IMG/VR virus record: IMGVR_UViG_3300030019_000003
Span: 186,001 to 250,000 of that record
DNA length: 64,000 nt
Direction: 5' to 3' (one strand)
Below, one piece after another: positions 3,591 to 54,877 of the stretch. Position 1 is the first letter of the stretch. Each line of letters starts with the position of its first letter. The translations under genes and the position numbers were made by a program. Below the pieces are notes generated by a model. That model saw only the letters and a program-made list of their open reading frames with translations, was not told the origin of the DNA and did no database searches.

Positions 3591-4304
3591 ATGGGTAGTG
3601 AATCACATGTACACAATACTGAATACCGTGAAGAAGAAGGACTCTGCGTTATACGCTATACGCGTAACCCAATGCTTTTGGAAAACAACTATATTATTCG
3701 TGAACAAAAAGCTCCGCACCGAACTGTCATTATTGATATTGACAATGAGCTCATCGTTATAGAAAATATACTTAAAAAATATATTCCAACTTCAAAATAC
3801 TGGTGGTTTACAGCGTCTACACGTTATCCTTTAACAGTAGAAGAAAAAATAGCATACTCTGAAACACATAAGATAGTTAACACGCCTTATTATCCTTTTA
3901 TAGGATTGCCTATCGTATTAGAGATACTTAAAAATATGGCTGTTGTAAACAGTGATGCTTATGAGCTATATTTTGGTAATCCTGTGCTAGATAAAAAAGA
4001 AGCTATCGTGTATGCCAATAGGGATAGAGTTAATACACAGCATGTTAATATAGTATTAGACTATATCGAAGATAACTCATCTGTTAATCTTAGGAATAGT
4101 GAACTTCTGAATGATGTGTCCTTTATAGTCAAGATTGTTGAAGAATTATTTACAAATAAGATAGCTTCTTTAGCGGCTGCATTTACAACGCACATCATTG
4201 ATTTTAATGTTACTGGCAAGTATGTTGTTATGTACAGTTATGGCGAAGCAGGATTAATTAGACTAGATGAAGCTACGGAGGTGATACGTGAGCGAGTATC
4301 TTAA
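3591..4304 (+). CDS. Hypothetical protein
   Basis: 237-aa ORF, AAGG RBS, overlaps the next gene. Confidence 0.7.
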   Translation: MGSESHVHNTEYREEEGLCVIRYTRNPMLLENNYIIREQKAPHRTVIIDIDNELIVIENILKKYIPTSKYWWFTASTRYPLTVEEKIAYSETHKIVNTPYYPFIGLPIVLEILKNMAVVNSDAYELYFGNPVLDKKEAIVYANRDRVNTQHVNIVLDYIEDNSSVNLRNSELLNDVSFIVKIVEELFTNKIASLAAAFTTHIIDFNVTGKYVVMYSYGEAGLIRLDEATEVIRERVS

Positions 4305-4875
4305 TAACCCAGATGTTCTTTACAGTATAGAGGATATGTACAGCCCTAAGAAAGCTAAAAAAGAGATGTTGGTTATACCTGCGGATATGCTACTTGAATT
4401 ACTTCCTGAGAAGTTCCTGCCATTATGCACTACTGCATACGCAGTTTTAACTTCAGATGAAAAGAATATGATACAAGCTGGTTTACTGGAAGGTCTTATA
4501 CGATTTATCACTACCTTTGGTTATGACGATTTATCAGTATGCCGAGTTAACCAACAATTTGTAAATACCTTTATTTCTATTTACTCTTATATTACAGAGA
4601 TACACTTTATAACGTATAATATTCTTGATATATCCTTAACAGAGAGTCAGGTGTACGAATATGTTTTCTTATTGAGACAAGCTGTTAATGATTTGCTACA
4701 TAATAATAACGTTGGATATAAAGATCTATCCGCAGCTGAGGATCCATCTGAGTTTAACATGTGCATGAAGTATTATGTTTATCTTGATGCTGATATTTCG
4801 TTAATAACAGATAACCATAAGAAGCAACCTTATTGTAACCTGTTTATAAAAAGGGTTACCTGTGCGCGAAATTAA
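4288..4875 (+). CDS. Hypothetical protein
   Basis: GTG start with GGAGG upstream; coupled to neighbours. Confidence 0.7.
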   Translation: MSEYLNNPDVLYSIEDMYSPKKAKKEMLVIPADMLLELLPEKFLPLCTTAYAVLTSDEKNMIQAGLLEGLIRFITTFGYDDLSVCRVNQQFVNTFISIYSYITEIHFITYNILDISLTESQVYEYVFLLRQAVNDLLHNNNVGYKDLSAAEDPSEFNMCMKYYVYLDADISLITDNHKKQPYCNLFIKRVTCARN

Positions 4876-5302
4876 AACAACCGTTATTGAAATTAACCTA
4901 ACAAGGCTTATGGGTCTAACTGGCAATATGATCCAAGACAGTCCAATAGAGTTGGAACTTATACCCTTATATAAGTATAGACATACAGAGGATAGCAACA
5001 CGTACACATTGTTCACAAACATCGTATTAGAAAAGTTATATGGCTCTGTTAAAAACTATACCCTAAGTGATATATACACGTTCATACCTAAAAAACGTTA
5101 TGAACATTGTTTCTTAAACTTTGTTCATACGTTGGAGATATTTATACTTAATAAGATACGACCTAATCCACTGGATATTGTGTTTCTTAAGTATAAAGTA
5201 TTTACTAAAGAAAGTATCATTGCTATCTTTAGAGTTGATTTTCTTAAGGAGAATTATAATGACGCTTTACCCATCGCTACTGACTCAGTATGTGCCGGAT
5301 AA
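4862..5302 (+). CDS. Hypothetical protein
   Basis: GTG start overlapping the upstream ORF end. Confidence 0.65.
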   Translation: MREIKTTVIEINLTRLMGLTGNMIQDSPIELELIPLYKYRHTEDSNTYTLFTNIVLEKLYGSVKNYTLSDIYTFIPKKRYEHCFLNFVHTLEIFILNKIRPNPLDIVFLKYKVFTKESIIAIFRVDFLKENYNDALPIATDSVCAG

Positions 5303-43472: not shown

Positions 43473-45332
43473 ATGAATGGTAACAACAATGGAGCAGGGT
43501 TAACGTTTGATGAAAATGAGGGTACTGGAAATCCAGCAGTAGGTCAAAATGAGAATTTGCAGCAACCTAATGGATACGCGCCTTATCAAAATGAGGGTTC
43601 AACCACGTATGATAATGGATTCAATTTGTTTCAAAGTGGCTTCTTATCAACACAACCTGGCTCAGAACTTACTGCGAAATACTCTAAAGGTATTTTAGAG
43701 TTTATCGAAAAAATTAAAAGAACCGGTTTTAAAGTTAGCGAACTTGACAACGCTACGATTACAAATTTAAAATACAGTTCTATCATCATCTCTGCGGTCA
43801 ATGGACCAGAAGTACTTTATTACACATTGCTTATTGCCGCTACAGGTAAAGCTTCTCATAATGTTAAAGATTACTTCAATGTTCTTTCTGATGCAGAACG
43901 TATGAGTCTTAAAGATGCAGATGAAGCAGTGCGCTCATTGTACTTACCTTATATCGCATTTGATAATGACTATAAAGCAGCGATCGAAGCAAAACTTGAT
44001 GAAACTTATGGTACAAAATACAAATACGTTTCTCTTGATGGTTTCATCATTCATGAAGATGTTGTTGACAGTGAAGATCTATATCGTCATATGTTTGCAA
44101 AAGCGTTTAATGCGTTCCATGCTGAAACAAAAATGAGTGATGGTGTTGGCGATGCTACTATTGAAAACATTGCAAGATCTGCAAACTATCGTATCGCAAG
44201 TAACGGATGTAGAAACAGCGTTTCAGCATTGACTCCATTTGGTGCTGCTGTTAGAACTGACTGGCAGTTATCTTTGATTCCACAACCTCGTAAACAATCT
44301 TCTAACAGTATTCACACTGAAGGTGCTGTTGGACCTATCTTAACAGTTGGTGGTTTTGTAGATGCTATCCCTGAACAAACAATGATCCAAGAAGGCTTTG
44401 GTCAAATTGCAGGTATCCGTTATCACCCACATATTATCGTAACAAATGTTGCAAGTGCGTATGAAACAACGGGTATGGCTCTTCTTGCTATTACTGTTGG
44501 TGTAAGTATGGTTAAACCTGAAATGTATCTTGCGTCATTATCGCCAAGAGCTAAAAACAATCCAGGCGCATTGAATGTATTTGCTAACCTTGCTAACAAT
44601 CCAAATGGTGGTGAGTTCTTAGATATGACAACTGCAGCGTATACTCCTGATGCTATCATGGATTCATTGTCTAAAATGTTTACATTGGCTCCAGTGTTCT
44701 CTATTGATATTGAAACTTTTGGTCCTGATGCTTATACACTTTCTGCATTCACAAGTCTTACTAAAGAGAACCCAACAACATTCGCAGGTGCTGCAGCTTA
44801 CTTGGTTAACGTTGCGTCTAAACTTACAAAAGGCATGTTTCCTACTGAATATGACCTTAACAAAGTTATTGCTGGATTTACACGTGTCCCAACAGGTTCA
44901 TATATTGATCATGGTTCTAATGTACCATCTGATATTCGTGACTTTGATATGATCCGTGTTGTTAATGAGTCTGTTAACAATCCTAAATTGATTTACAAAT
45001 GGTACAACTCTAACACTAACCCAAATGGTTACAATGAAAAAGTTGAAGTTCTTGCAGCTATTAATCCAGGTGCTAAGATCACTGGTGAAGCAAGACGTGT
45101 TACGTTACATCCTGAGTTTATTGCAACACTTGTTAACGCAGTTTCTGCAAATAACCTTAGACCAAGTGCTACTCCTGAGGTTGAACTACAAACAACAAAT
45201 GGTTTCGTAGGTGGTGGTTTCTTTGCTACTGCTGGTGTTACCAATGTTGGTTTTGGTAACTTTGGTGGATTTGGTACAAATAGACCTGTAGGCTTTGGTA
45301 ACAACCAAGCTACATTTAGTAATCGTTTCTAA
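43473..45332 (+). CDS. chmA: Chimallin, phage nuclear shell protein (phiKZ gp54 / 201phi2-1 gp105-like)
   Basis: 619 aa; collinear motifs FGAAVRTD, PHIIVTNV, NPGALN, PVFSIDIETFG, SDIRDFD and TGEARRVTLHPEFI; lies upstream of the nvRNAP beta' gene. Confidence 0.9.
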   Translation: MNGNNNGAGLTFDENEGTGNPAVGQNENLQQPNGYAPYQNEGSTTYDNGFNLFQSGFLSTQPGSELTAKYSKGILEFIEKIKRTGFKVSELDNATITNLKYSSIIISAVNGPEVLYYTLLIAATGKASHNVKDYFNVLSDAERMSLKDADEAVRSLYLPYIAFDNDYKAAIEAKLDETYGTKYKYVSLDGFIIHEDVVDSEDLYRHMFAKAFNAFHAETKMSDGVGDATIENIARSANYRIASNGCRNSVSALTPFGAAVRTDWQLSLIPQPRKQSSNSIHTEGAVGPILTVGGFVDAIPEQTMIQEGFGQIAGIRYHPHIIVTNVASAYETTGMALLAITVGVSMVKPEMYLASLSPRAKNNPGALNVFANLANNPNGGEFLDMTTAAYTPDAIMDSLSKMFTLAPVFSIDIETFGPDAYTLSAFTSLTKENPTTFAGAAAYLVNVASKLTKGMFPTEYDLNKVIAGFTRVPTGSYIDHGSNVPSDIRDFDMIRVVNESVNNPKLIYKWYNSNTNPNGYNEKVEVLAAINPGAKITGEARRVTLHPEFIATLVNAVSANNLRPSATPEVELQTTNGFVGGGFFATAGVTNVGFGNFGGFGTNRPVGFGNNQATFSNRF

Positions 45333-45641: not shown

Positions 45642-46916
45642 ATGGCTATAACACAAACGCTTATACCTATAGATCAACTCTATCAACGTACAGGTGCCAA
45701 GATCATATTGAATAAGCTAAATGCCTTCAGTATGACTGATCAAGAAACCTTGTCTAAAAGTATCATGACTGTTTATGATAATGTTGACGTTATTTCTACG
45801 ATACCGCAATGTGATTGTGGCGCTATTAAAGGTAGGTACCTATTAGGAACACGTTGCCATACCTGCGGTACTGAGTGTAAAGAACTACATGAGAAAGTAG
45901 ATCCTATCCTATGGTTAGAAGCTATGGATAAAGGTTTACGATTCTTAAATCCAGGATTCTGGATGTTGATGTCCGAGATACTAGATTCTAAAAAACTGGT
46001 AGATTGGCTAAGATGGCTATGTGATCCAACCTATAGTAATGAAACACCTGTTCCACCACATATACAAGGAATTTATCTTGACGTCTTAAAAAGTAAACGT
46101 GAGTATAATAATACGATGTTACGCTTAAGAGATATCATGGTTTATATTCTTAATATACCAAGACCAACAGCAAAAGCAGATAGCTTATCTAAAGTATCTA
46201 TTATTAAACTAATAGAACTGTATGATCAGTATACAGCAGATGATATTTTATTCTCAACATATCTTCCGATTGTTAATAAGAAATTGTTTGTTATGGAAAA
46301 TACGGCTAAGGGTAAGTTTGTTAATCTTGTTGTATCTGAGATTCTTGATATCGTACTATCGTGGGTTAAAAGTTCTAATGCATTTGAGATTGATAGGAAT
46401 CTTAAAAAAGCAGGCATCATTACAGCTATGGCAGTATCGGAATTAAGTAAGTTCTTTTCAGAATTTACGGATAAGTATATCTTGAAAAAATCAGGATTGT
46501 TTCGTAAGCATGTATATGGTTCACGAGGTCACTTTACTTTCCGATGTGTTATCGTGTCAATATCAGGTCCGCATGATTATGACGAGATACACATACCTTG
46601 GGCTGTAGGTGTAACTGTTTTACGACCTATGCTTCTTAATAAGCTACGCCAACGCGGTGTAACCTATAAAGCAAGTCATAAGTTGCTTATGCAATCTGTT
46701 AAAAAGTTTGATCCGTTAATAAATGAGTTACTATTAGAGTTACTAGCAGAATCTCCATTAGGAAAACTACCAGTAATATCACAACGTAACCCATCACTAA
46801 CACAATCTAGTGCACTATTAACGTATATTACTAAAGTAAAGACGGATGTTGATGATAAGACTGTAGGTATTAGCAGCCTTGTTTGTAAACTACCTAATGC
46901 TGATTTTGATGGGGAT
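45642..46916 (+). CDS. Non-virion RNA polymerase beta' N-terminal subunit, exon 1 (phiKZ gp55-like)
   Basis: Zn motif CDCG...CHTC, KKSGLFRKHVYGSR, QRNPSL and catalytic NADFDGD; the ORF-track end at 46949 is read-through into the intron. Confidence 0.92.
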
Positions 46917-47400
46917 GAACATTTCGTCCCCCTAGGCATTGCTGCCTAGTAAAAAACCTCTCTAATTGCGGGAACCGACTTAAGACTATAGCTACTACTC
47001 GTACCTAGAAATAGAGTATGATACTTACGGAGTAATGTTTCCAGTAAGAAAAGTAAAAACGCTATAATATTGCGGAATCGACGCAGCGAAGCTTCTAAGT
47101 CCGATGAGGATATGAAGTAGGCTCAACGACTATCGAAACGACGCACTACAGTGTATGAGATGCCTATAGACGGTGTCGGTATAGGTAACTATACTCAACG
47201 GAGTAGAGTAGGGCCCAAGTGGGTGGGTATAGAATCCCTTAAATCGAAACGAGAGGAATTTGTAATTTTTAATTACAAGTTATGATATAGTCTATGCGAC
47301 TTATAAGTCTTTCCTAGTTTACAAACTAGGTCATCGTGTAAAACACACGAGCCGCATGTAAAGATGCGAGTATATTTAACGAATATGCTAAATATTTTAA
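46917..47400 (+). ncRNA. Group I self-splicing intron (IA-like), no internal ORF
   Basis: P1 with U.G pair (GGGGAU/GUCCCC); P AAUUGCGGGA; Q AAUCGACGCAGC; R CUCAACGACUAU; S GAUAUAGUC; P3 CCUCUC/GAGAGG; P8 hairpin; P10 AUUUC/GAAAU. Confidence 0.92.
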
Positions 47401-48411: not shown

Positions 48412-49161
48412 ATGAAAAAGCTTATATTATTGTTAATGGTACTCGTTGTATCGTTATTCGCAAAACCATTAAAACCAGAGAGTGTTCTTGCTAAAGAACT
48501 TACCAAACTAGATAAGGGTCAGCAAGAATTACTATTTAAATCTTACATTTATGCTGAACAAAATGGATACGGGTATACATTAACAGCTGTGGCTTGGAAA
48601 GAAAGTAACTTTGGTAAGATAGTTGCTAATCCAAAAGAGGGAAAGTACGGAACGTACGGACCATATCAATCTAAAGTAGAAGATGTCCTAGCAAGGAACC
48701 ATTTAAAGCCTACTAAAGATAATATCGCTAAGGTGAGAGAGCAATTATTGCACGATCTTAAATTCGCGGCTAATGATGCCATAATCGAATTAAAAGCATG
48801 GGATCATTCACATGCTAAAAAGAAAAAGGTAAATGTATATCGCAGTACACTAGCAGCTTATAATGCAGGTACGGCAGCGGAGAAATCTAGCTTAGGAAAA
48901 GGATACGCTGAAGATATCGTACATCGATTACCAATCGTTAAAAAGTACATAATGAGTAAGCCTGAACTTTTAGCATCTTATAAAGAACATGCAAAGACAA
49001 TAGATAGATTGTCATCTTTTATAAAAGTTTCAGATCCTAAGGATATACGAATTATCTTATCTTGTACTACGTTTGACTTAAAACCGCTAGGTGCTACTTA
49101 TCTTAGTACTGTCACAGCGCGGGAGTTAATACCTAGTTTAGCAAAAGACGAATTAGTTTAA
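48412..49161 (+). CDS. Lytic transglycosylase (SLT/lysozyme-like) with signal peptide; candidate endolysin
   Basis: MKKLILLLMVLVVSLFA signal; AVAWKESNFG (catalytic Glu), GPYQ and LAAYNAG. Confidence 0.85.
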   Translation: MKKLILLLMVLVVSLFAKPLKPESVLAKELTKLDKGQQELLFKSYIYAEQNGYGYTLTAVAWKESNFGKIVANPKEGKYGTYGPYQSKVEDVLARNHLKPTKDNIAKVREQLLHDLKFAANDAIIELKAWDHSHAKKKKVNVYRSTLAAYNAGTAAEKSSLGKGYAEDIVHRLPIVKKYIMSKPELLASYKEHAKTIDRLSSFIKVSDPKDIRIILSCTTFDLKPLGATYLSTVTARELIPSLAKDELV

Positions 49162-49174
49162 TACATGCTTAAAA

Positions 49175-49209
49175 TAACATACACAGAGACATAGTCTCTG
49201 TGTATGTTA
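49175..49209. terminator. Bidirectional 16-bp stem hairpin
   Basis: TAACATACACAGAGAC-ata-GTCTCTGTGTATGTTA. Confidence 0.8.
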
Positions 49210-49917
49210 AGATTTCTTTTTTCTACTAAAGTCAACTGAAAAATGTGCGGCATCTATAAACGATAAATCAATAACGGTACCTACGGCATAAGCCATGTTC
49301 ATAAAGGTTTCATACTTAGCAGCTGACTGCTTCATAGTACCTGTTAACAAAGCAGGTGCAAATAAAGAAACATTTAAGAGAGGCGTATTAATAAGGCTGC
49401 ACGTACCAACATGATAGTCTATCCAATCTAAAGCATCGTATTTAAACATGATACCTATATGCTCGTCTATCCATAACGGTGTTAATTCTGCATTATCAAC
49501 ATTAATAAAGTCTATCTTACAATCTGGTATTAGCGCCATGATGACAATACTAAATATCTCTTTCTCTTCTAGATCAAGACTATAGGGATAGGTGTTAATG
49601 AAAAGAGTAGGACGTTCACTTATGGTAATATCGTTAAGACCTGTTAATTCTTCACCGTAGTGTTTACGTATCATACCTATAATACGCGTTGGTAAAGCAA
49701 GTTTTAGAAGTTGTTTATCACGACTTCTATAGAACGCTCTAAAGATATCATAAGAGATCGTTTCAAACTCATCCTTAATACGTTTGTCATACTTACCTGT
49801 TGAACGCATACGTACCGCTATATCGTTATTAAACATATATAACAAAGGTAATCGTGTATCAAAAAGAGTATCGATATCTACATAGATATTCTTAGGTTGT
49901 TTTTTAACGTCTTCCAC
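49207..49917 (-). CDS. Conserved phiKZ-like protein (HAD-like DxD start)
   Basis: IYVDIDTLFDTRL; INTYPYSL; GGAG RBS. Confidence 0.65.
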   Translation of the reverse strand: MEDVKKQPKNIYVDIDTLFDTRLPLLYMFNNDIAVRMRSTGKYDKRIKDEFETISYDIFRAFYRSRDKQLLKLALPTRIIGMIRKHYGEELTGLNDITISERPTLFINTYPYSLDLEEKEIFSIVIMALIPDCKIDFINVDNAELTPLWIDEHIGIMFKYDALDWIDYHVGTCSLINTPLLNVSLFAPALLTGTMKQSAAKYETFMNMAYAVGTVIDLSFIDAAHFSVDFSRKKKS

Positions 49918-50305
49918 TGTCTTCTCCTAAAGAGCGTTTGATAGCATCTAGCTGATTTAAACTTTCTTCGTCTGCTTTACGTTTTTCCATTTTTAAAAGT
50001 TTAAGTTCTTCAATATAGGCATCCTTCTGAGAACGTGTCAACTCCATAAACTCACTCAACGACATACCAAAAAAATCTTTAAATTCATAAATATGATATT
50101 CCGCTATAAAATCTTTTAGTTCATTATGCTCTCGTGTTGATTCTTCTTCTTTGTATAGGGTTACTGAGAATACCGAATAAAGATCATCATCCTCAGGTTT
50201 CTTACTATAGTACATATTATTAAACGACTCTTTAAGAAGTAGTTTTGTACCTATACTTGATAAAGCTGTTGTGACATTGGAGTACAAATTATCAATATAC
50301 TCCAT
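49904..50305 (-). CDS. Tail/baseplate chaperone 'T'-like domain, probably expressed as a -1 frameshift fusion
   Basis: FKDFFGMSLSEFMEL motif; frame stays open upstream to 50413; no properly spaced RBS before ATG 50305. Confidence 0.65.
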   Translation of the reverse strand: MEYIDNLYSNVTTALSSIGTKLLLKESFNNMYYSKKPEDDDLYSVFSVTLYKEEESTREHNELKDFIAEYHIYEFKDFFGMSLSEFMELTRSQKDAYIEELKLLKMEKRKADEESLNQLDAIKRSLGEDSGRR

Positions 50306-50355
50306 TTTATTAACACGTGTATCACTCCAGTCAACACCTAAGATATGGGGTTTAC

Positions 50356-51885
50356 TTACCCCATCCTTCCTGCCAACAGCGTCGCGTTGAGAGAGCTTAG
50401 GGCGAAAAAATAGTCAACTATATTAAAAGGTATAATTTCTGGATGACCACCTTCCTTTGCAGCATTATCATTAAGTTCTTTACAACTAGGACATTCAAAG
50501 ATAGGAAATCCTATCGCTGTAATATAGGACGCATTGATAAAATCATAACAAACATCAATAACCTCGTCAGTGATAACGTTATCCCTAGATAACTCATCAA
50601 GAGCGTTATCTATAGCGGAACGTGTTGTCAATGTTACCACCTTGCCATTTTCATCTGTTAATGACATCTTCGCGATAACGGTATTATAGATACCTGCAAC
50701 AACGGTTCCAATAATATCTCTAACCTTGTTCTCTTTAGTAACATTATTATCAGCCGACGTAAATATCTCTTCAGCTATTTTAGATATTTTATTAATCCAT
50801 CTCACGCCGTTGACGCACATGTTCATAATATTAGGTATGGCCAACTCTAGTGTCAACACGGTACCTGCGGCAGAACCATCATAAATGGTGATCTCTTTTG
50901 TTGCTGTCATTTTACCTGCCAGCTTACTTTGATATTCTAATACTTCTTCAATACTAACAGAATTAGGATTTCGTTTAGAAAGTGTCAGTAGCATACTATC
51001 TGTAAACTGTGAATCATCACGAACCATCATAGCTGAAAGATCAACTCTACCTGTGATACTAAAATTACATTTAGGTCTACCATCAGAATCAAGAACGATG
51101 TTGTTTTTACAATAGCGTGTGATGATAGTTCCCTTAGGGTATTGTGACATTAAAAGTCCAAGTACTAATGAATAGTAATCATTACCAGAAATATAGTTTC
51201 TGACATCATCACCATCTGGACAGATCAATGTATAGCTACGAATATGAGAACAAATTAAGTCAACAATAGCGGTGTTAACAGTAGCACCAAGATTGTTAAA
51301 CGCGATGGTGTTAGTATCTTTACCAGCTCTAATAAGCTCTGCTGATATTCTATTTTGAAATGCTACGATAGTTGTTAATGTTGGAGCTTGCAAGGTTACC
51401 CAAAACCCAGAGTGTGGTAATGGGATATCGATGATATCTGTTTGCTTAGCAACAGATAAAAAACGCATAACATTGATATTAGAATCTTTGTTTGTTTTAT
51501 TTGTAGCCATAGGCGTAGGACCATGTATCAAATCTTTACCACCATAGCGCATAGCGTTATGCTTTGGGAGTGATTGATTATTTACCATGTTCTCTAGAAA
51601 AGCTGTACCGTATAGTAAACTTATTCCAGGTATTAGAGCTTTGAATTGTTGATCAATACCATCGGGTAATTTGATGTTCATATTTTCATCGGTAACACTT
51701 CGTAGGAATTCTTTAAAAACAGAAGTATTAGCAAAAGTATCAACAGGAAACGGCATGTTAACAGAAGCTATTTTAGATTCATCTTTAGAGTCAACAGGTA
51801 TGAACCAGTTCTTATTAAAGAAGTTATCATTTTTAGGGGGTTGTTGTTCTTCTGTAGGAAGATCTGCATTAATGTTAGAGTCCAC
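50356..51885 (-). CDS. Putative tail/baseplate assembly chaperone (T4 gp26-like Zn motifs)
   Basis: IPLPHSGFWVTLQAP, CKNN...C, FECPSC and C-terminal DYFF. Confidence 0.6.
   Translation of the reverse strand: MDSNINADLPTEEQQPPKNDNFFNKNWFIPVDSKDESKIASVNMPFPVDTFANTSVFKEFLRSVTDENMNIKLPDGIDQQFKALIPGISLLYGTAFLENMVNNQSLPKHNAMRYGGKDLIHGPTPMATNKTNKDSNINVMRFLSVAKQTDIIDIPLPHSGFWVTLQAPTLTTIVAFQNRISAELIRAGKDTNTIAFNNLGATVNTAIVDLICSHIRSYTLICPDGDDVRNYISGNDYYSLVLGLLMSQYPKGTIITRYCKNNIVLDSDGRPKCNFSITGRVDLSAMMVRDDSQFTDSMLLTLSKRNPNSVSIEEVLEYQSKLAGKMTATKEITIYDGSAAGTVLTLELAIPNIMNMCVNGVRWINKISKIAEEIFTSADNNVTKENKVRDIIGTVVAGIYNTVIAKMSLTDENGKVVTLTTRSAIDNALDELSRDNVITDEVIDVCYDFINASYITAIGFPIFECPSCKELNDNAAKEGGHPEIIPFNIVDYFFALSSLNATLLAGRMG
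50404..50410 (-). promoter_or_regulatory. Putative -1 ribosomal frameshift slippery site T TTT TTC
   Basis: X XXY YYZ heptamer in the frame of 50356-51885; the -1 frame is bounded by TGA (50414-50416) and is open to 49904. Confidence 0.65.
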
Positions 51886-52712: not shown

Positions 52713-53615
52713 ATGATGAACTATGAAATACAAGATTATCTTGACAGTTATTTAAGAGAGGCTTTAATTGCTAATAAATATGTTATGTATCGCCGTCTTT
52801 TTAATTTGTTGTTTAATCTCAACACTACGATCAAAAATAATAATCATATCGAGCTTGATGATCTTCAGGGTGAAATGATTGATACTATTACCGTATACGA
52901 AGACGATACGGACTCTGTTAATTTACATCTTGAGGTGGTGTTTACAAAAGCCATGAAAACTTATATTGGTAGATACGGCATTATTATAAGCGATGATGCA
53001 ACTTTATCAGATTATGAAGCGATACTATTAGGATATTATAACCTGATAAATCCTGATCCTAACATGATAGAATATATACAGATGCAGTTAGAGGATATAG
53101 AGTATGAAGATAACCTATTAAAACTTGCTAGTATCTTAAGTATGAATTCTACTAAATCAGTTACATCAGTATATGAAGTACTGGATGATGTTAGAGAGGA
53201 TATTTTTATACTACTAGCAACTTACTTCAGTAACATGCTAGATGTTAATGGTGAACCACTTACGGATAATACTATCGATATTGTGTTAGCTTTAACAAAA
53301 GCTGATCCAGGTTTTAATAATACCTTTATATTAAAAGATGTTATTATTAATGGTTACCGTGCTGTTGGTATTGACATGCTGTTAACAGATCTTTACAGTA
53401 ATATTAATAAGCATACTAATGATTACAATCTTATACCCTATGAGATCGTTGCGACGCTATACATAGCAAATGATACTAAGGATGACATGTTGTCAGGATA
53501 CTTAGAAAAATTTAATATGGAAGCATTAGTGTTCATGCAGAATGAAAGTGGTAAAGAAGTTATTAATGCTGCCGTAGAAATGTTAATAAATAAGATATAT
53601 GCGAGTCTAACATGA
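52713..53615 (+). CDS. Conserved phiKZ-like protein upstream of vRNAP beta' (gp79-like by synteny)
   Basis: Acidic helical 300-aa ORF, ATGA-type overlap with the next gene. Confidence 0.6.
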   Translation: MMNYEIQDYLDSYLREALIANKYVMYRRLFNLLFNLNTTIKNNNHIELDDLQGEMIDTITVYEDDTDSVNLHLEVVFTKAMKTYIGRYGIIISDDATLSDYEAILLGYYNLINPDPNMIEYIQMQLEDIEYEDNLLKLASILSMNSTKSVTSVYEVLDDVREDIFILLATYFSNMLDVNGEPLTDNTIDIVLALTKADPGFNNTFILKDVIINGYRAVGIDMLLTDLYSNINKHTNDYNLIPYEIVATLYIANDTKDDMLSGYLEKFNMEALVFMQNESGKEVINAAVEMLINKIYASLT

Positions 53616-54877
53616 AAGCAACTGAATACTTTTTAAAAATGATACAAACAGATCATGTCTTTAAACTTAAATGGTATTATTCTGTTTTTGCACTTATAAG
53701 TAAGAATGCGACTGCTAATGAGTACCTTAAGATAGAAGAAGACAGTTACTACGTTCTTATAGAAAAAGAATGGATTAAGATAGATGATAGACTTCCTGTT
53801 GATGGCGCGTTATTAAGTATGATGGAACCTATCGTTTTAGAAAAAGATAGTTTAGAGAATGTACATGAGCGTTTAGAAACAACAATCGGTCTAACAGTTA
53901 TGAATGTTCTTTACTTCACATCTATCTTTGGTACTATGTTTAATTTTCAAAATAAAGCTATGACACCTAAAAGTGTTGAGAATATGGTCATCACCGCCTA
54001 TAAAAAAGATGCTATAACGGTAGAACAATATCACAGCTTTATGGATGTTGGTACCTTCTTAGAAGGTCTTGCAAGAATCATAACCGTATCAATTACGCCT
54101 AAGACCATTGTTCCTCCCCCTGGTATTAAGGAATACTCTATAAAAGTGCGAGAAGAGATGGTTGCCAAGTATGGTACTAACTGGGTAAAAGATAGATCTA
54201 GAATTGTTGAGTATGAAGAGGCTCTTAAGAAGTATGATAAGGCTTGGCTAAAAGATGATCCTTCTTTAGGTAAACTTATGTCTGGTAAGATACTTAATGA
54301 TGCCAGGGTTAAAATGAATTTAGGATTTGGGGCAGAGTCTGCGTTTGATGAAACAGGTACCGATGTTAATCTTATTACTAACTCATTACTAGACGGTTAT
54401 CCGAAGGATGCTGCTTCATTAGCTGTTATTTTTAACACTTCAAGAGCAGGGTCATTCTTTAGGGGCCATGAGACACAGAAAGGCGGTGCCAGTGCTAAAG
54501 ACCTACTAAGAGCTACTGCTGGTATCGTTATTGTTCCTGGCGATTGTAACACCCGCCTAGGCCATCCTGTGACGGTTGGTAAATGGATGGGAGATAATCT
54601 TACAGGTAGATATATTATAGAAGGTGACAAAGTTTCTAAAATAGAAAACATGTTTGATTATATAGGTAAGACTATTGTTATTAGATCTCCACAATATTGT
54701 AATCAGGCTAATGGTATTTGTTCTATATGTTCAGGTGAGGTTATGGCTAAATATCCTAACGGTGTATCTATTTTAGCCACAGATATTTCAGGAGCTATGT
54801 TAAATAGTTCGTTAAAGAAAATGCATGCTTCAAAGTCAACAACTATGAAGTTTAATATAAAAGAAACTATCCGCTAA
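53612..54877 (+). CDS. Virion RNA polymerase beta' C-terminal subunit (phiKZ gp80-like)
   Basis: SRAGSFFRGHETQKGG (bridge helix-like), DCNT, IRSPQYC, CSICSG and LKKMH. Confidence 0.88.
   Translation: MKATEYFLKMIQTDHVFKLKWYYSVFALISKNATANEYLKIEEDSYYVLIEKEWIKIDDRLPVDGALLSMMEPIVLEKDSLENVHERLETTIGLTVMNVLYFTSIFGTMFNFQNKAMTPKSVENMVITAYKKDAITVEQYHSFMDVGTFLEGLARIITVSITPKTIVPPPGIKEYSIKVREEMVAKYGTNWVKDRSRIVEYEEALKKYDKAWLKDDPSLGKLMSGKILNDARVKMNLGFGAESAFDETGTDVNLITNSLLDGYPKDAASLAVIFNTSRAGSFFRGHETQKGGASAKDLLRATAGIVIVPGDCNTRLGHPVTVGKWMGDNLTGRYIIEGDKVSKIENMFDYIGKTIVIRSPQYCNQANGICSICSGEVMAKYPNGVSILATDISGAMLNSSLKKMHASKSTTMKFNIKETIR

Follow-up and report, generated by a model that had tools for sequence, protein, structure and literature searches.

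The window analyzed here is a 64,000-nt stretch of the IMG/VR record IMGVR_UViG_3300030019_000003, which represents an uncultured phage, with a genomic G+C content of 34%, from a peat metagenome. On its minus strand, we found a 509-aa gene followed by a small open reading frame (ORF) of 133 aa. According to sequence homology and gene neighborhood, the 509-aa gene is the homologue of phiKZ gp77, PhiPA3 gp074 and 201phi2-1 gp136, namely the Chimalliviridae core gene cg18, which is found in all nucleus-forming jumbo phages. The features of this locus are as follows.

50356..51885 (-), the 0-frame gene of 509 aa, ending in NIVDYFFALSSLNATLLAGRMG before the stop
50414..50416 (-), a TGA that closes the -1 frame 3 nt upstream of the heptamer and sets the 5' limit of the shift window, in which a shift must happen
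50404..50410 (-), the slippery heptamer T_TTT_TTC, with TTT (F493) as the P-site codon and TTC (F494) as the A-site codon
50359..50403 (-), a dual-coding overlap, in which the 0 frame encodes the last 15 residues of the short form and the -1 frame encodes RPKLSQRDAVGRKDG
50356..50358 (-), the 0-frame stop TAA, which ends the 509-aa product and sets the 3' limit of the shift window
50345..50364 (-), a hairpin, ATGGGG-taagtaaa-CCCCAT, spanning the 0-frame stop
50306..50355 (-), a stretch annotated as intergenic that is coding in the -1 frame, reads SKPHILGVDWSDTRVNK and contains no ATG/GTG/TTG
49904..50305 (-), the called 133-aa ORF (ATG at 50305, stop at 49906-49904), which is the C-terminal part of the trans-frame extension and the homologue of phiKZ gp76.4, PhiPA3 gp073 and 201phi2-1 gp135

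An earlier note, made from the sequence alone, had proposed that a programmed -1 frameshift fuses these two ORFs, and all the elements it described are present in the sequence. The codons TAT TTT TTC place the heptamer in the X_XXY_YYZ phase, and the heptamer ends 48 nt before the end of the 0-frame stop. From the TGA, the -1 frame reads L FF RPKLSQRDAVGRKDGVSKPHILGVDWSDTRVNK M into the 133-aa ORF and stays open for 168 codons, with no ATG/GTG/TTG for 105 nt. The predicted fusion is 494 + 166 = 660 aa, with the junction DYFFRPK. The only GGAG upstream of the ATG at 50305 ends 19 nt before it, whereas 61% of naive ORF starts in this genome have a well-spaced SD. Within this genome, there are 14 in-phase T_TTT_TTY heptamers in about 238 ORFs, and only this one is followed by a long -1 ORF (168 codons, against 13 for the next longest).

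We wondered whether a homopolymer sequencing or assembly error, or a recent inactivating frameshift, had split a single 660-aa gene, since homopolymer runs are error-prone and the two pieces do behave as one protein family unit. However, five independent JGI assemblies give the same two ORFs, and contigs from two peat runs and from a roughly 98% identical wastewater variant show no indel at the T run. The same structure also appears in 37 independently sequenced phages, including viable ones, and none of the 150 best family representatives is an in-frame fusion, which fits a need for both products. In addition, the 0-frame tail is a conserved, confidently modeled helix. An artefact or a broken gene is therefore extremely unlikely.

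To establish the identity of the two parts, we searched profile and sequence databases. The 509-aa protein matched phrog_4585 (E = 2.7e-61), and tblastn found 189-208 chimallivirus records, including phiKZ gp77 (1e-14) and PhiPA3 gp074 (9e-22); 1137 clusters were found in the representative search. Identity to phiKZ gp77 is about 23%, and the divergently arranged gp78-, gp79- and gp80-like neighbors are shared. Alignment of the family revealed four invariant cysteines, C259, C273, C465 and C468. The AF2 model of the 509-aa protein has a pLDDT of 87 and a pTM of 0.89, and the last 15 residues form part of its C-terminal helix (489-508). A search for related loci in viral contigs found nothing. 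tblastn with the 133-aa ORF alone also found nothing, and word-based homologue searches for the extension found only 5 proteins. The extension is too divergent for such searches, and its homology was instead shown through synteny-anchored alignment. phrog_12109 and related families match the extensions of the relatives. The extension is predicted to be helical with a long C-terminal helix (AF2 pLDDT 65 overall, and 84-89 for residues 100-160 of the extension), and substitutions in the 98%-identical variant fall mostly on third codon positions.

As this arrangement on its own would be weak evidence in a genome of this composition, we compared the locus with 37 distant relatives (about 20-35% protein identity, more than 12 genera plus metagenomes), including phiKZ, PhiPA3, 201phi2-1 and SPN3US. 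In 37 of 37, the small downstream ORF is in the -1 frame, where one third would be expected by chance, and stays open back across the upstream stop, with overlaps of 52-256 nt. An in-phase N_TTT_TTN is kept at the same Phe-Phe site in 36 of 37: T_TTT_TT[T/C/G/A] is present in 33 (T_TTT_TTT in phiKZ) and G/A_TTT_TTY in three, while the remaining one has CTT TTT and keeps a T5 run. Four relatives lack a perfect X_XXY_YYZ. The site holds even where the 0-frame residue becomes Leu (TTG, TTA). In at least 12 genomes the -1 frame is closed 3-12 nt upstream of the heptamer, which pins the shift to the T run. An alternative heptamer, T_TTC_CCG, lies 36 nt upstream in PhiPA3 and PA1C, but it is not conserved, and in phiKZ it lies outside the open -1 frame.

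We next examined synonymous positions. The first Phe codon is TTT in 25 of 25 genomes tested, against each gene's own codon preference (log10 P = -13); RSL2, for example, uses TTT 0 of 18 times elsewhere in the gene. The preceding codon ends in T in 22 of 25. Nucleotides just after the heptamer (CG.CC.A.GC) are conserved in the closest relatives. Across 32 genomes, 488 -1-frame codons lie beyond the 0-frame stop and before any ATG/GTG/TTG without a single stop, against 8.3% stops in the other two frames (P about 1e-18). The genomes are not phylogenetically independent, and these P values are thus overstated. Conserved motifs lie in this stretch, among them H-[IV]-L-x-[IV]-D-[WFY], which the window phage shares with relatives.

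These data also bear on the possibility of two ordinary genes, in which the small ORF is translated on its own from ATG 50305, from a non-canonical start or by reinitiation, and the open -1 frame and the T run are incidental. Gene callers and all 30 GenBank records among the relatives annotate two genes, and 39% of naive ORF starts in this genome also lack a well-spaced SD. However, the length from the heptamer to the -1 stop is 153-182 aa in 35 of 36 complete cases (214 aa in the remaining one, L041), whereas annotated starts range from -78 to +279 nt, and start-codon positions from -84 to +261 nt from the heptamer. In phiKZ, the first start codon is 261 nt after the heptamer. Together with conserved, stop-free coding sequence upstream of any start codon in most genomes and a T run held against codon bias, this makes two separate genes very unlikely, although some independent initiation in addition to frameshifting cannot be excluded.

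To find a stimulatory element, we analyzed RNA folding downstream of the site in three ways. The z-scores are mostly above -2 in 25 genomes, and no consensus structure was found in 10 close relatives. The hairpin pointed out in the earlier note starts 39 nt 3' of the heptamer, is not conserved and is not statistically unusual, the fold at this site in the window having z = -1.1 with 25 of 200 shuffles folding as well. It is probably not a frameshift stimulator. No SD-like element was seen upstream of the heptamer in the window or in phiKZ, as judged by eye. The efficiency of the shift is therefore unknown and may be low.

The lack of a stimulatory structure, of the kind often seen at ribosomal sites, raises the possibility that RNA polymerase rather than the ribosome slips, adding one extra U on the run so that a fraction of mRNAs encode the fusion in a single frame. 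The site is a homopolymer of 5-8 T's, and these phages use unusual multisubunit RNA polymerases, encoded next door, whose slippage behavior is unknown. However, the runs are short, with T6 in the window and T5 in PA1C, Noxifer and pVa-21, while known bacterial cases appear to need about 8-9. Moreover, the run never extends 3' of the heptamer, but is extended 5' by a T at the wobble position of the preceding codon in 22 of 25 genomes, which is the X position required for P-site re-pairing. Slippage during transcription thus seems unlikely, but it is not excluded, and no RNA reads were available.

Taken together, comparative evidence, in the absence of protein, ribosome-profiling or reporter evidence, indicates that the 509-aa gene and the 133-aa ORF are very probably one recoded gene. 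We infer that most ribosomes read TAT TTT TTC GCC and stop at TAA, giving the 509-aa protein, whose last helix completes the fold, while a minority slip back one base when the Phe-tRNAs sit on TTT and TTC, both of which can re-pair with UUU. The slipped ribosomes would continue as DYFF-RPKLSQ through the supposed intergenic region and the 133-aa ORF. In the resulting 660-aa protein, the last 15 residues are replaced by a flexible linker of about 35 residues and a helical module of about 130 residues that ends in a long helix. Both forms share the Zn-binding (four-cysteine) body, so that the cell would get a fixed ratio of a plain and an extended form. This arrangement is annotated in none of the 30 GenBank records; in the literature searched, cg18 is listed only as 'hypothetical protein' and no frameshift is mentioned.

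If the frameshift is real, every genome in the family is mis-annotated at this locus: the small ORF has arbitrary starts, and in phiKZ more than half of the extension is missing. The protein of one of roughly 70 core genes of these intensively studied phages would then exist in this phage in two forms of about 57 and 75 kDa, and knock-out, Tn-seq, localization and interaction studies that treat the two ORFs separately would need re-reading. It would also add a deeply conserved case, with a U-rich heptamer and no visible stimulator, to the short list of phage frameshifts outside the tail-chaperone genes.

The inference of the earlier note that phiKZ-like phages share the recoding is strongly supported by comparison, but its label of a tail/baseplate chaperone gene pair is not established. 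As in lambda G/GT and P2 E/E+E', the slip would occur on an X_XXY_YYZ heptamer a few codons before the stop of the upstream gene, the downstream ORF has no dependable start of its own, two products would share an N-terminal part, and the arrangement is conserved where the sequence is not. However, the upstream protein is 509 aa (up to about 720 in relatives) rather than about 140, and the heptamer is U-rich rather than G_GGA_AAG. Pfam gave no tail-chaperone match for either part, the PHROG families are all of unknown function, and one Atlas feature hit to P2 GpE scored 0.83, below the level of a lead. Pfam hits to DUF3871 in 3 family members were not informative. Nor does the gene lie between tail-tube and tape-measure genes; its neighbors are RNA polymerase beta-like genes, a chimallin-like gene and unknown genes, and the phiKZ locus lies between the gp75 helicase and gp80. 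The Churi homologue is listed among early-expressed proteins from proteomics. The site also recalls the T7/T3 capsid gene 10A/10B, where Phe-tRNA slippage on a U-rich site near the gene end likewise appears to yield a minor extended form without a strong classical stimulator. The T7 extension, however, is short (about 50 aa) and dispensable, whereas here it is about 165 aa and a conserved protein module, and the arrangement is kept across a whole virus family.

The only support for a baseplate role is a remote likeness between predicted folds. Foldseek against BFVD found many 'baseplate hub' proteins of the T4 gp26/gp51 type (PF12322) at E 4e-4 to 1e-2 and TM about 0.5 by target, and an ESM Atlas cluster with PF12322 also gave TM 0.5; these are the only named proteins whose predicted folds resemble the 509-aa protein. 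They have a CPxC motif after a strand near the C-terminus. Searches of solved structures by sequence, by Foldseek and by VIA-align (all Z below 4) gave no relative. At the sequence level, the PF12322 HMM found nothing in this genome or in phiKZ, RP12, SPN3US and C-ZP2022, while T4 gave two hits; no member of the family set A1 hit PF12322, and hhalign to single T4 gp26 and gp51 sequences gave only a weak CPxC match (16-32% probability). The 509-aa protein is also twice the size and is not in a baseplate gene cluster. That it is a non-virion assembly factor distantly like T4 gp26/gp51 thus remains an inference; 201phi2-1 gp136 and gp135 carry no virion mass-spectrometry note, while the neighboring gp138 does. 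More speculatively, and with low likelihood, the recoding may be an obligatory, family-wide feature that works without any cis stimulator because the phage supplies the stimulus, either through a ribosome-binding protein of the gp014 type or translation localized at the nuclear shell, or through slippage of its own non-canonical RNA polymerase on T5-8 runs. The two isoforms would then be the chimallivirus equivalent of a chaperone/adaptor pair for hub or virion assembly, derived from the T4 gp26/gp51 lineage. Interestingly, T4 gene 26 also yields two nested products in its annotation, but these come from an internal start, not a frameshift.

To examine the putative recoding site, we first inspected the minus strand of the window, where the following features were identified:
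51885..50356, minus strand, a 509-aa ORF ending ...NIVDYFFALSSLNATLLAGRMG before its stop codon
50416-50414, a TGA in the -1 frame
50410-50404, T_TTT_TTC, placed in the X_XXY_YYZ phase by the codons TAT TTT TTC of the 509-aa ORF
50364-50345, the hairpin ATGGGG/CCCCAT
50305 to 49904, the called 133-aa ORF (ATG at 50305, stop at 49906-49904)
The heptamer ends 48 nt before the end of the stop codon. After the TGA, the -1 frame reads L-FF-RPKLSQRDAVGRKDGVSKPHILGVDWSDTRVNK-M... without a stop into the called 133-aa ORF, so that the fusion would be 494 + 166 = 660 aa, as stated in the earlier note. The only GGAG before the ATG ends 19 nt upstream, whereas 61% of naive ORF starts in this genome have a well-spaced SD. 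The arrangement described in the earlier note is therefore confirmed.

We wondered whether such a site might arise by chance in this genome. The window is part of a 252,159-bp virus record with terminal repeats from a peat metagenome, with 34% G+C, and T-rich heptamers are common in it: 14 in-phase T_TTT_TTY were found in about 238 ORFs. Of these, only this one is followed by a long -1 ORF, of 168 codons against 13 for the next longest. Five independent assemblies give the same two ORFs. Further, contigs from the two peat runs, and from a roughly 98% identical variant in a wastewater metagenome (run X17), a very different habitat from peat, show no indel at the T run. Over 571 bases (window 50034-50604) the variant has 11 substitutions and no gap; those in the 133-aa ORF fall mostly on third codon positions, and within the pre-ATG linker there is one synonymous and one Arg-to-His change.

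To identify the gene, we compared the 509-aa protein with phage protein families and found that it belongs to phrog_4585 (E 2.7e-61). By tblastn it matches 189-208 phage records, all phiKZ-like jumbo phages, including phiKZ gp77, PhiPA3 gp074 and 201phi2-1 gp136. The phiKZ gp077 is core gene cg18 of the Chimalliviridae and is listed as 'hypothetical protein' (supplement of PMC10299810). The neighborhood also matches phiKZ, as a small gene lies directly upstream on the same strand, and gp79-like and RNA-polymerase-beta genes diverge from it. No tail genes are nearby. Other genes noted around the locus in the window are:
43473-45332, plus strand, a chimallin-like nuclear shell protein gene (phrog_4795, E 1.8e-22)
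45642-46949 and 53612-54877, both plus strand, two phage multisubunit RNA polymerase beta-like genes
48412-49161, plus strand, a 249-aa ORF with an N-terminal hydrophobic, signal-like segment (MKKLILLLMVLVVSLFA), matching phrog_600, of unknown function
The peat-metagenome phage is therefore a distant, uncultured nucleus-forming (chimallin-encoding) jumbo phage.

To further analyze the conservation of this arrangement, we collected the locus from 30 GenBank chimalliviruses of many genera and 8 metagenomic relatives, one of them cut by a contig end, in addition to the window itself. In 37 of 37 relatives, the small downstream ORF is in the -1 frame of the gp77 homologue, and the frame is open back across the upstream stop, with overlaps of 52-256 nt. 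By chance, the -1 relation alone would hold in one third of cases. At the conserved Phe-Phe position, the codons are TTT TT[T/C/G/A] in all relatives but one. A strict T_TTT_TTN is present in 33 relatives and G/A_TTT_TTY in three (PhiPA3, Noxifer, PA1C). The exception is Vibrio phage pVa-21 (locus L043, about 2422-2430), where the homologous codons are CTT TTT (Leu-Phe), leaving only a T5 run and a U_UUU tetramer, although the -1 relation and the open overlap are still kept. We noticed that PhiPA3 (position 4059 of locus L002) and PA1C (position 2433 of locus L027), which have an imperfect heptamer at the Phe-Phe site, carry a second formal heptamer, T_TTC_CCG, 36 nt upstream in the conserved FPHL motif and inside the open -1 frame; in phiKZ the same motif lies outside the open frame. 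The site persists where the 0-frame amino acid changes to Leu (TTG in pEa_SNUABM_54, TTA in the relative L040), and the constraint is therefore on the nucleotides, not on the amino acid. The first Phe codon is TTT in all 25 genomes tested, although most of these genes prefer TTC: RSL2 has 0 of 18 TTT elsewhere, and RSF1, RP12 and PhiPA3 each have 2 of 16-21. Treated as independent, this gives log10 P = -13. The preceding codon ends in T in 22 of 25.

Next, we asked whether the region lacking a start codon is coding. From the heptamer to the -1 stop, the length is 153-182 aa in 35 of 36 complete cases, and 214 aa in the relative L041. In contrast, public annotations of the small downstream ORF are inconsistent, with starts ranging from 78 nt before to 279 nt after the heptamer. 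phiKZ gp76.4 (4101-4604 of locus L001) starts 261 nt after the heptamer, so that more than half of the conserved extension is unannotated; Simmy50 gp271 (4026-4574 of locus L003) starts 78 nt before the heptamer and overlaps gp272 by 136 nt; and the ORF of the metagenomic relative L010 (4512-5060) is called at 89 aa out of 182. Inconsistent calls were also noted in the relatives L031 and L020. In most genomes, no ATG/GTG/TTG exists in the -1 frame for 60-260 nt after the heptamer (phiKZ 261 nt, L010 210 nt, window 105 nt), and in at least 12 genomes the -1 frame is closed by a stop 3-12 nt before the heptamer. Nevertheless, conserved residues lie in that stretch, namely FF[YR]P... and GH[IV]...FG in the phiKZ group, and FFRP[KML]...[HN][IV]LE[IV]D[WFY] in the window's group. 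Summed over 32 genomes, 488 -1-frame codons lie beyond the 0-frame stop and before any start codon without a single stop, while the other two frames carry 8.3% stops there, giving P about 1e-18. The genomes are related, so these probabilities are overstated; however, the proteins are only about 20% identical, and the spacing around the site varies (27-135 nt to the 0-frame stop). The simplest reading is that this sequence is reached from the upstream frame, and the only place it can be reached is the T run.

We also searched exhaustively for members of the family in which the two parts are fused in frame. Of the 1137 family clusters found, the best 150 are 290-645 aa long and all end within a few residues of the position where the query ends. 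The few longer ones are extended at the N-terminus, and none carries the extension in frame, which fits a requirement for both products.

As for the mechanism, the T run is extended 5' through the wobble base of the preceding codon and is never extended 3' of the heptamer, a phase-specific pattern that tandem re-pairing of P- and A-site tRNAs needs. We then looked for a stimulatory RNA structure downstream and found none. Folding of 80 nt downstream in 25 genomes gave z-scores mostly between +1 and -2, ten close relatives have no consensus structure, and the window's own fold has z = -1.1. The hairpin proposed in the earlier note starts 39 nt after the heptamer and is not conserved, and is probably irrelevant. 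Thus, the efficiency is unknown and, by inference, may be a few per cent. ARAGORN found only one tRNA gene in the whole phage genome, tRNA-Met (CAT), outside the window (93003-93077 of contig C1), and no phage tRNA-Phe that could influence slippage. Slippage by RNA polymerase on the same run would give the same protein; in the absence of usable RNA reads, it is only argued against by the runs of only 5-6 T's in several genomes, including the window. Taken together, recoding is very likely, and ribosomal -1 slippage is the most likely mechanism, held with somewhat less but still good confidence.

Programmed frameshifting is a known mechanism, but the instance appears to be new, in that it concerns a core gene of a whole phage family. 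None of the 30 GenBank records carries a joined CDS at this locus, and no report of it was found in full-text searches, which did not cover most subscription journals, nor in the core-genome paper or a 2025 review; prior mention elsewhere cannot be excluded.

To obtain clues to the function of the protein, we built an AlphaFold model from 89 family members, which is confident (pLDDT 87, pTM 0.89). Four cysteines are invariant across these members, as two CxxC-like pairs far apart in the sequence, C465/C468 and C259/C273 (window 50482-50493 and 51067-51111, minus strand), which suggests a structural Zn site in the cg18/gp77 family. In the model, the Phe-Phe site (F493, F494) lies at the start of the last helix (489-508), and the long form therefore loses most of that helix and gains the extension. 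The extension itself models poorly (pLDDT 65), with a predicted disordered first 34 residues, followed by helices and ending in a long helix (126-164).

No solved structure was found to resemble the body. Among predicted viral structures, the chimallivirus homologues are followed by many proteins named baseplate hub subunit or hub assembly protein, at E 4e-4 to 1e-2 and TM about 0.5 by target, and the ESM Atlas gives the same single named link, PF12322. T4 gp26 and gp51 (3803-4429, minus strand, and 4480-5229, plus strand, of the phage T4 locus L036) both match PF12322, so they are paralogues; T4 gene 26 is annotated with a nested second product, 26', a different way of making two forms of a hub-assembly protein. 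However, the PF12322 HMM finds nothing in this or four chimallivirus genomes, and hhalign gives only a weak CPxC match. Evidence on where and when the protein acts is thin: 201phi2-1 gp136 and gp135 carry no virion mass-spectrometry note, unlike the neighboring gp138, and the Churi homologue (gp256) is listed among early-expressed proteins from proteomic experiments (PMC11849849). We therefore regard a non-virion assembly factor distantly related to T4 gp26/gp51 as a lead, not a finding. The earlier note had called the two ORFs a tail/baseplate chaperone gene pair; this identity is unproven, and the locus does not satisfy the criteria for a tail chaperone of the G/GT family.

Additionally, we noticed that the next gene (window 49207-49917, minus strand; 236 aa, phrog_3328, GTG start) overlaps the end of the extension ORF by 14 nt. 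It follows the extension ORF in the window's closer relatives (233-243 aa), so it may be part of the same operon.
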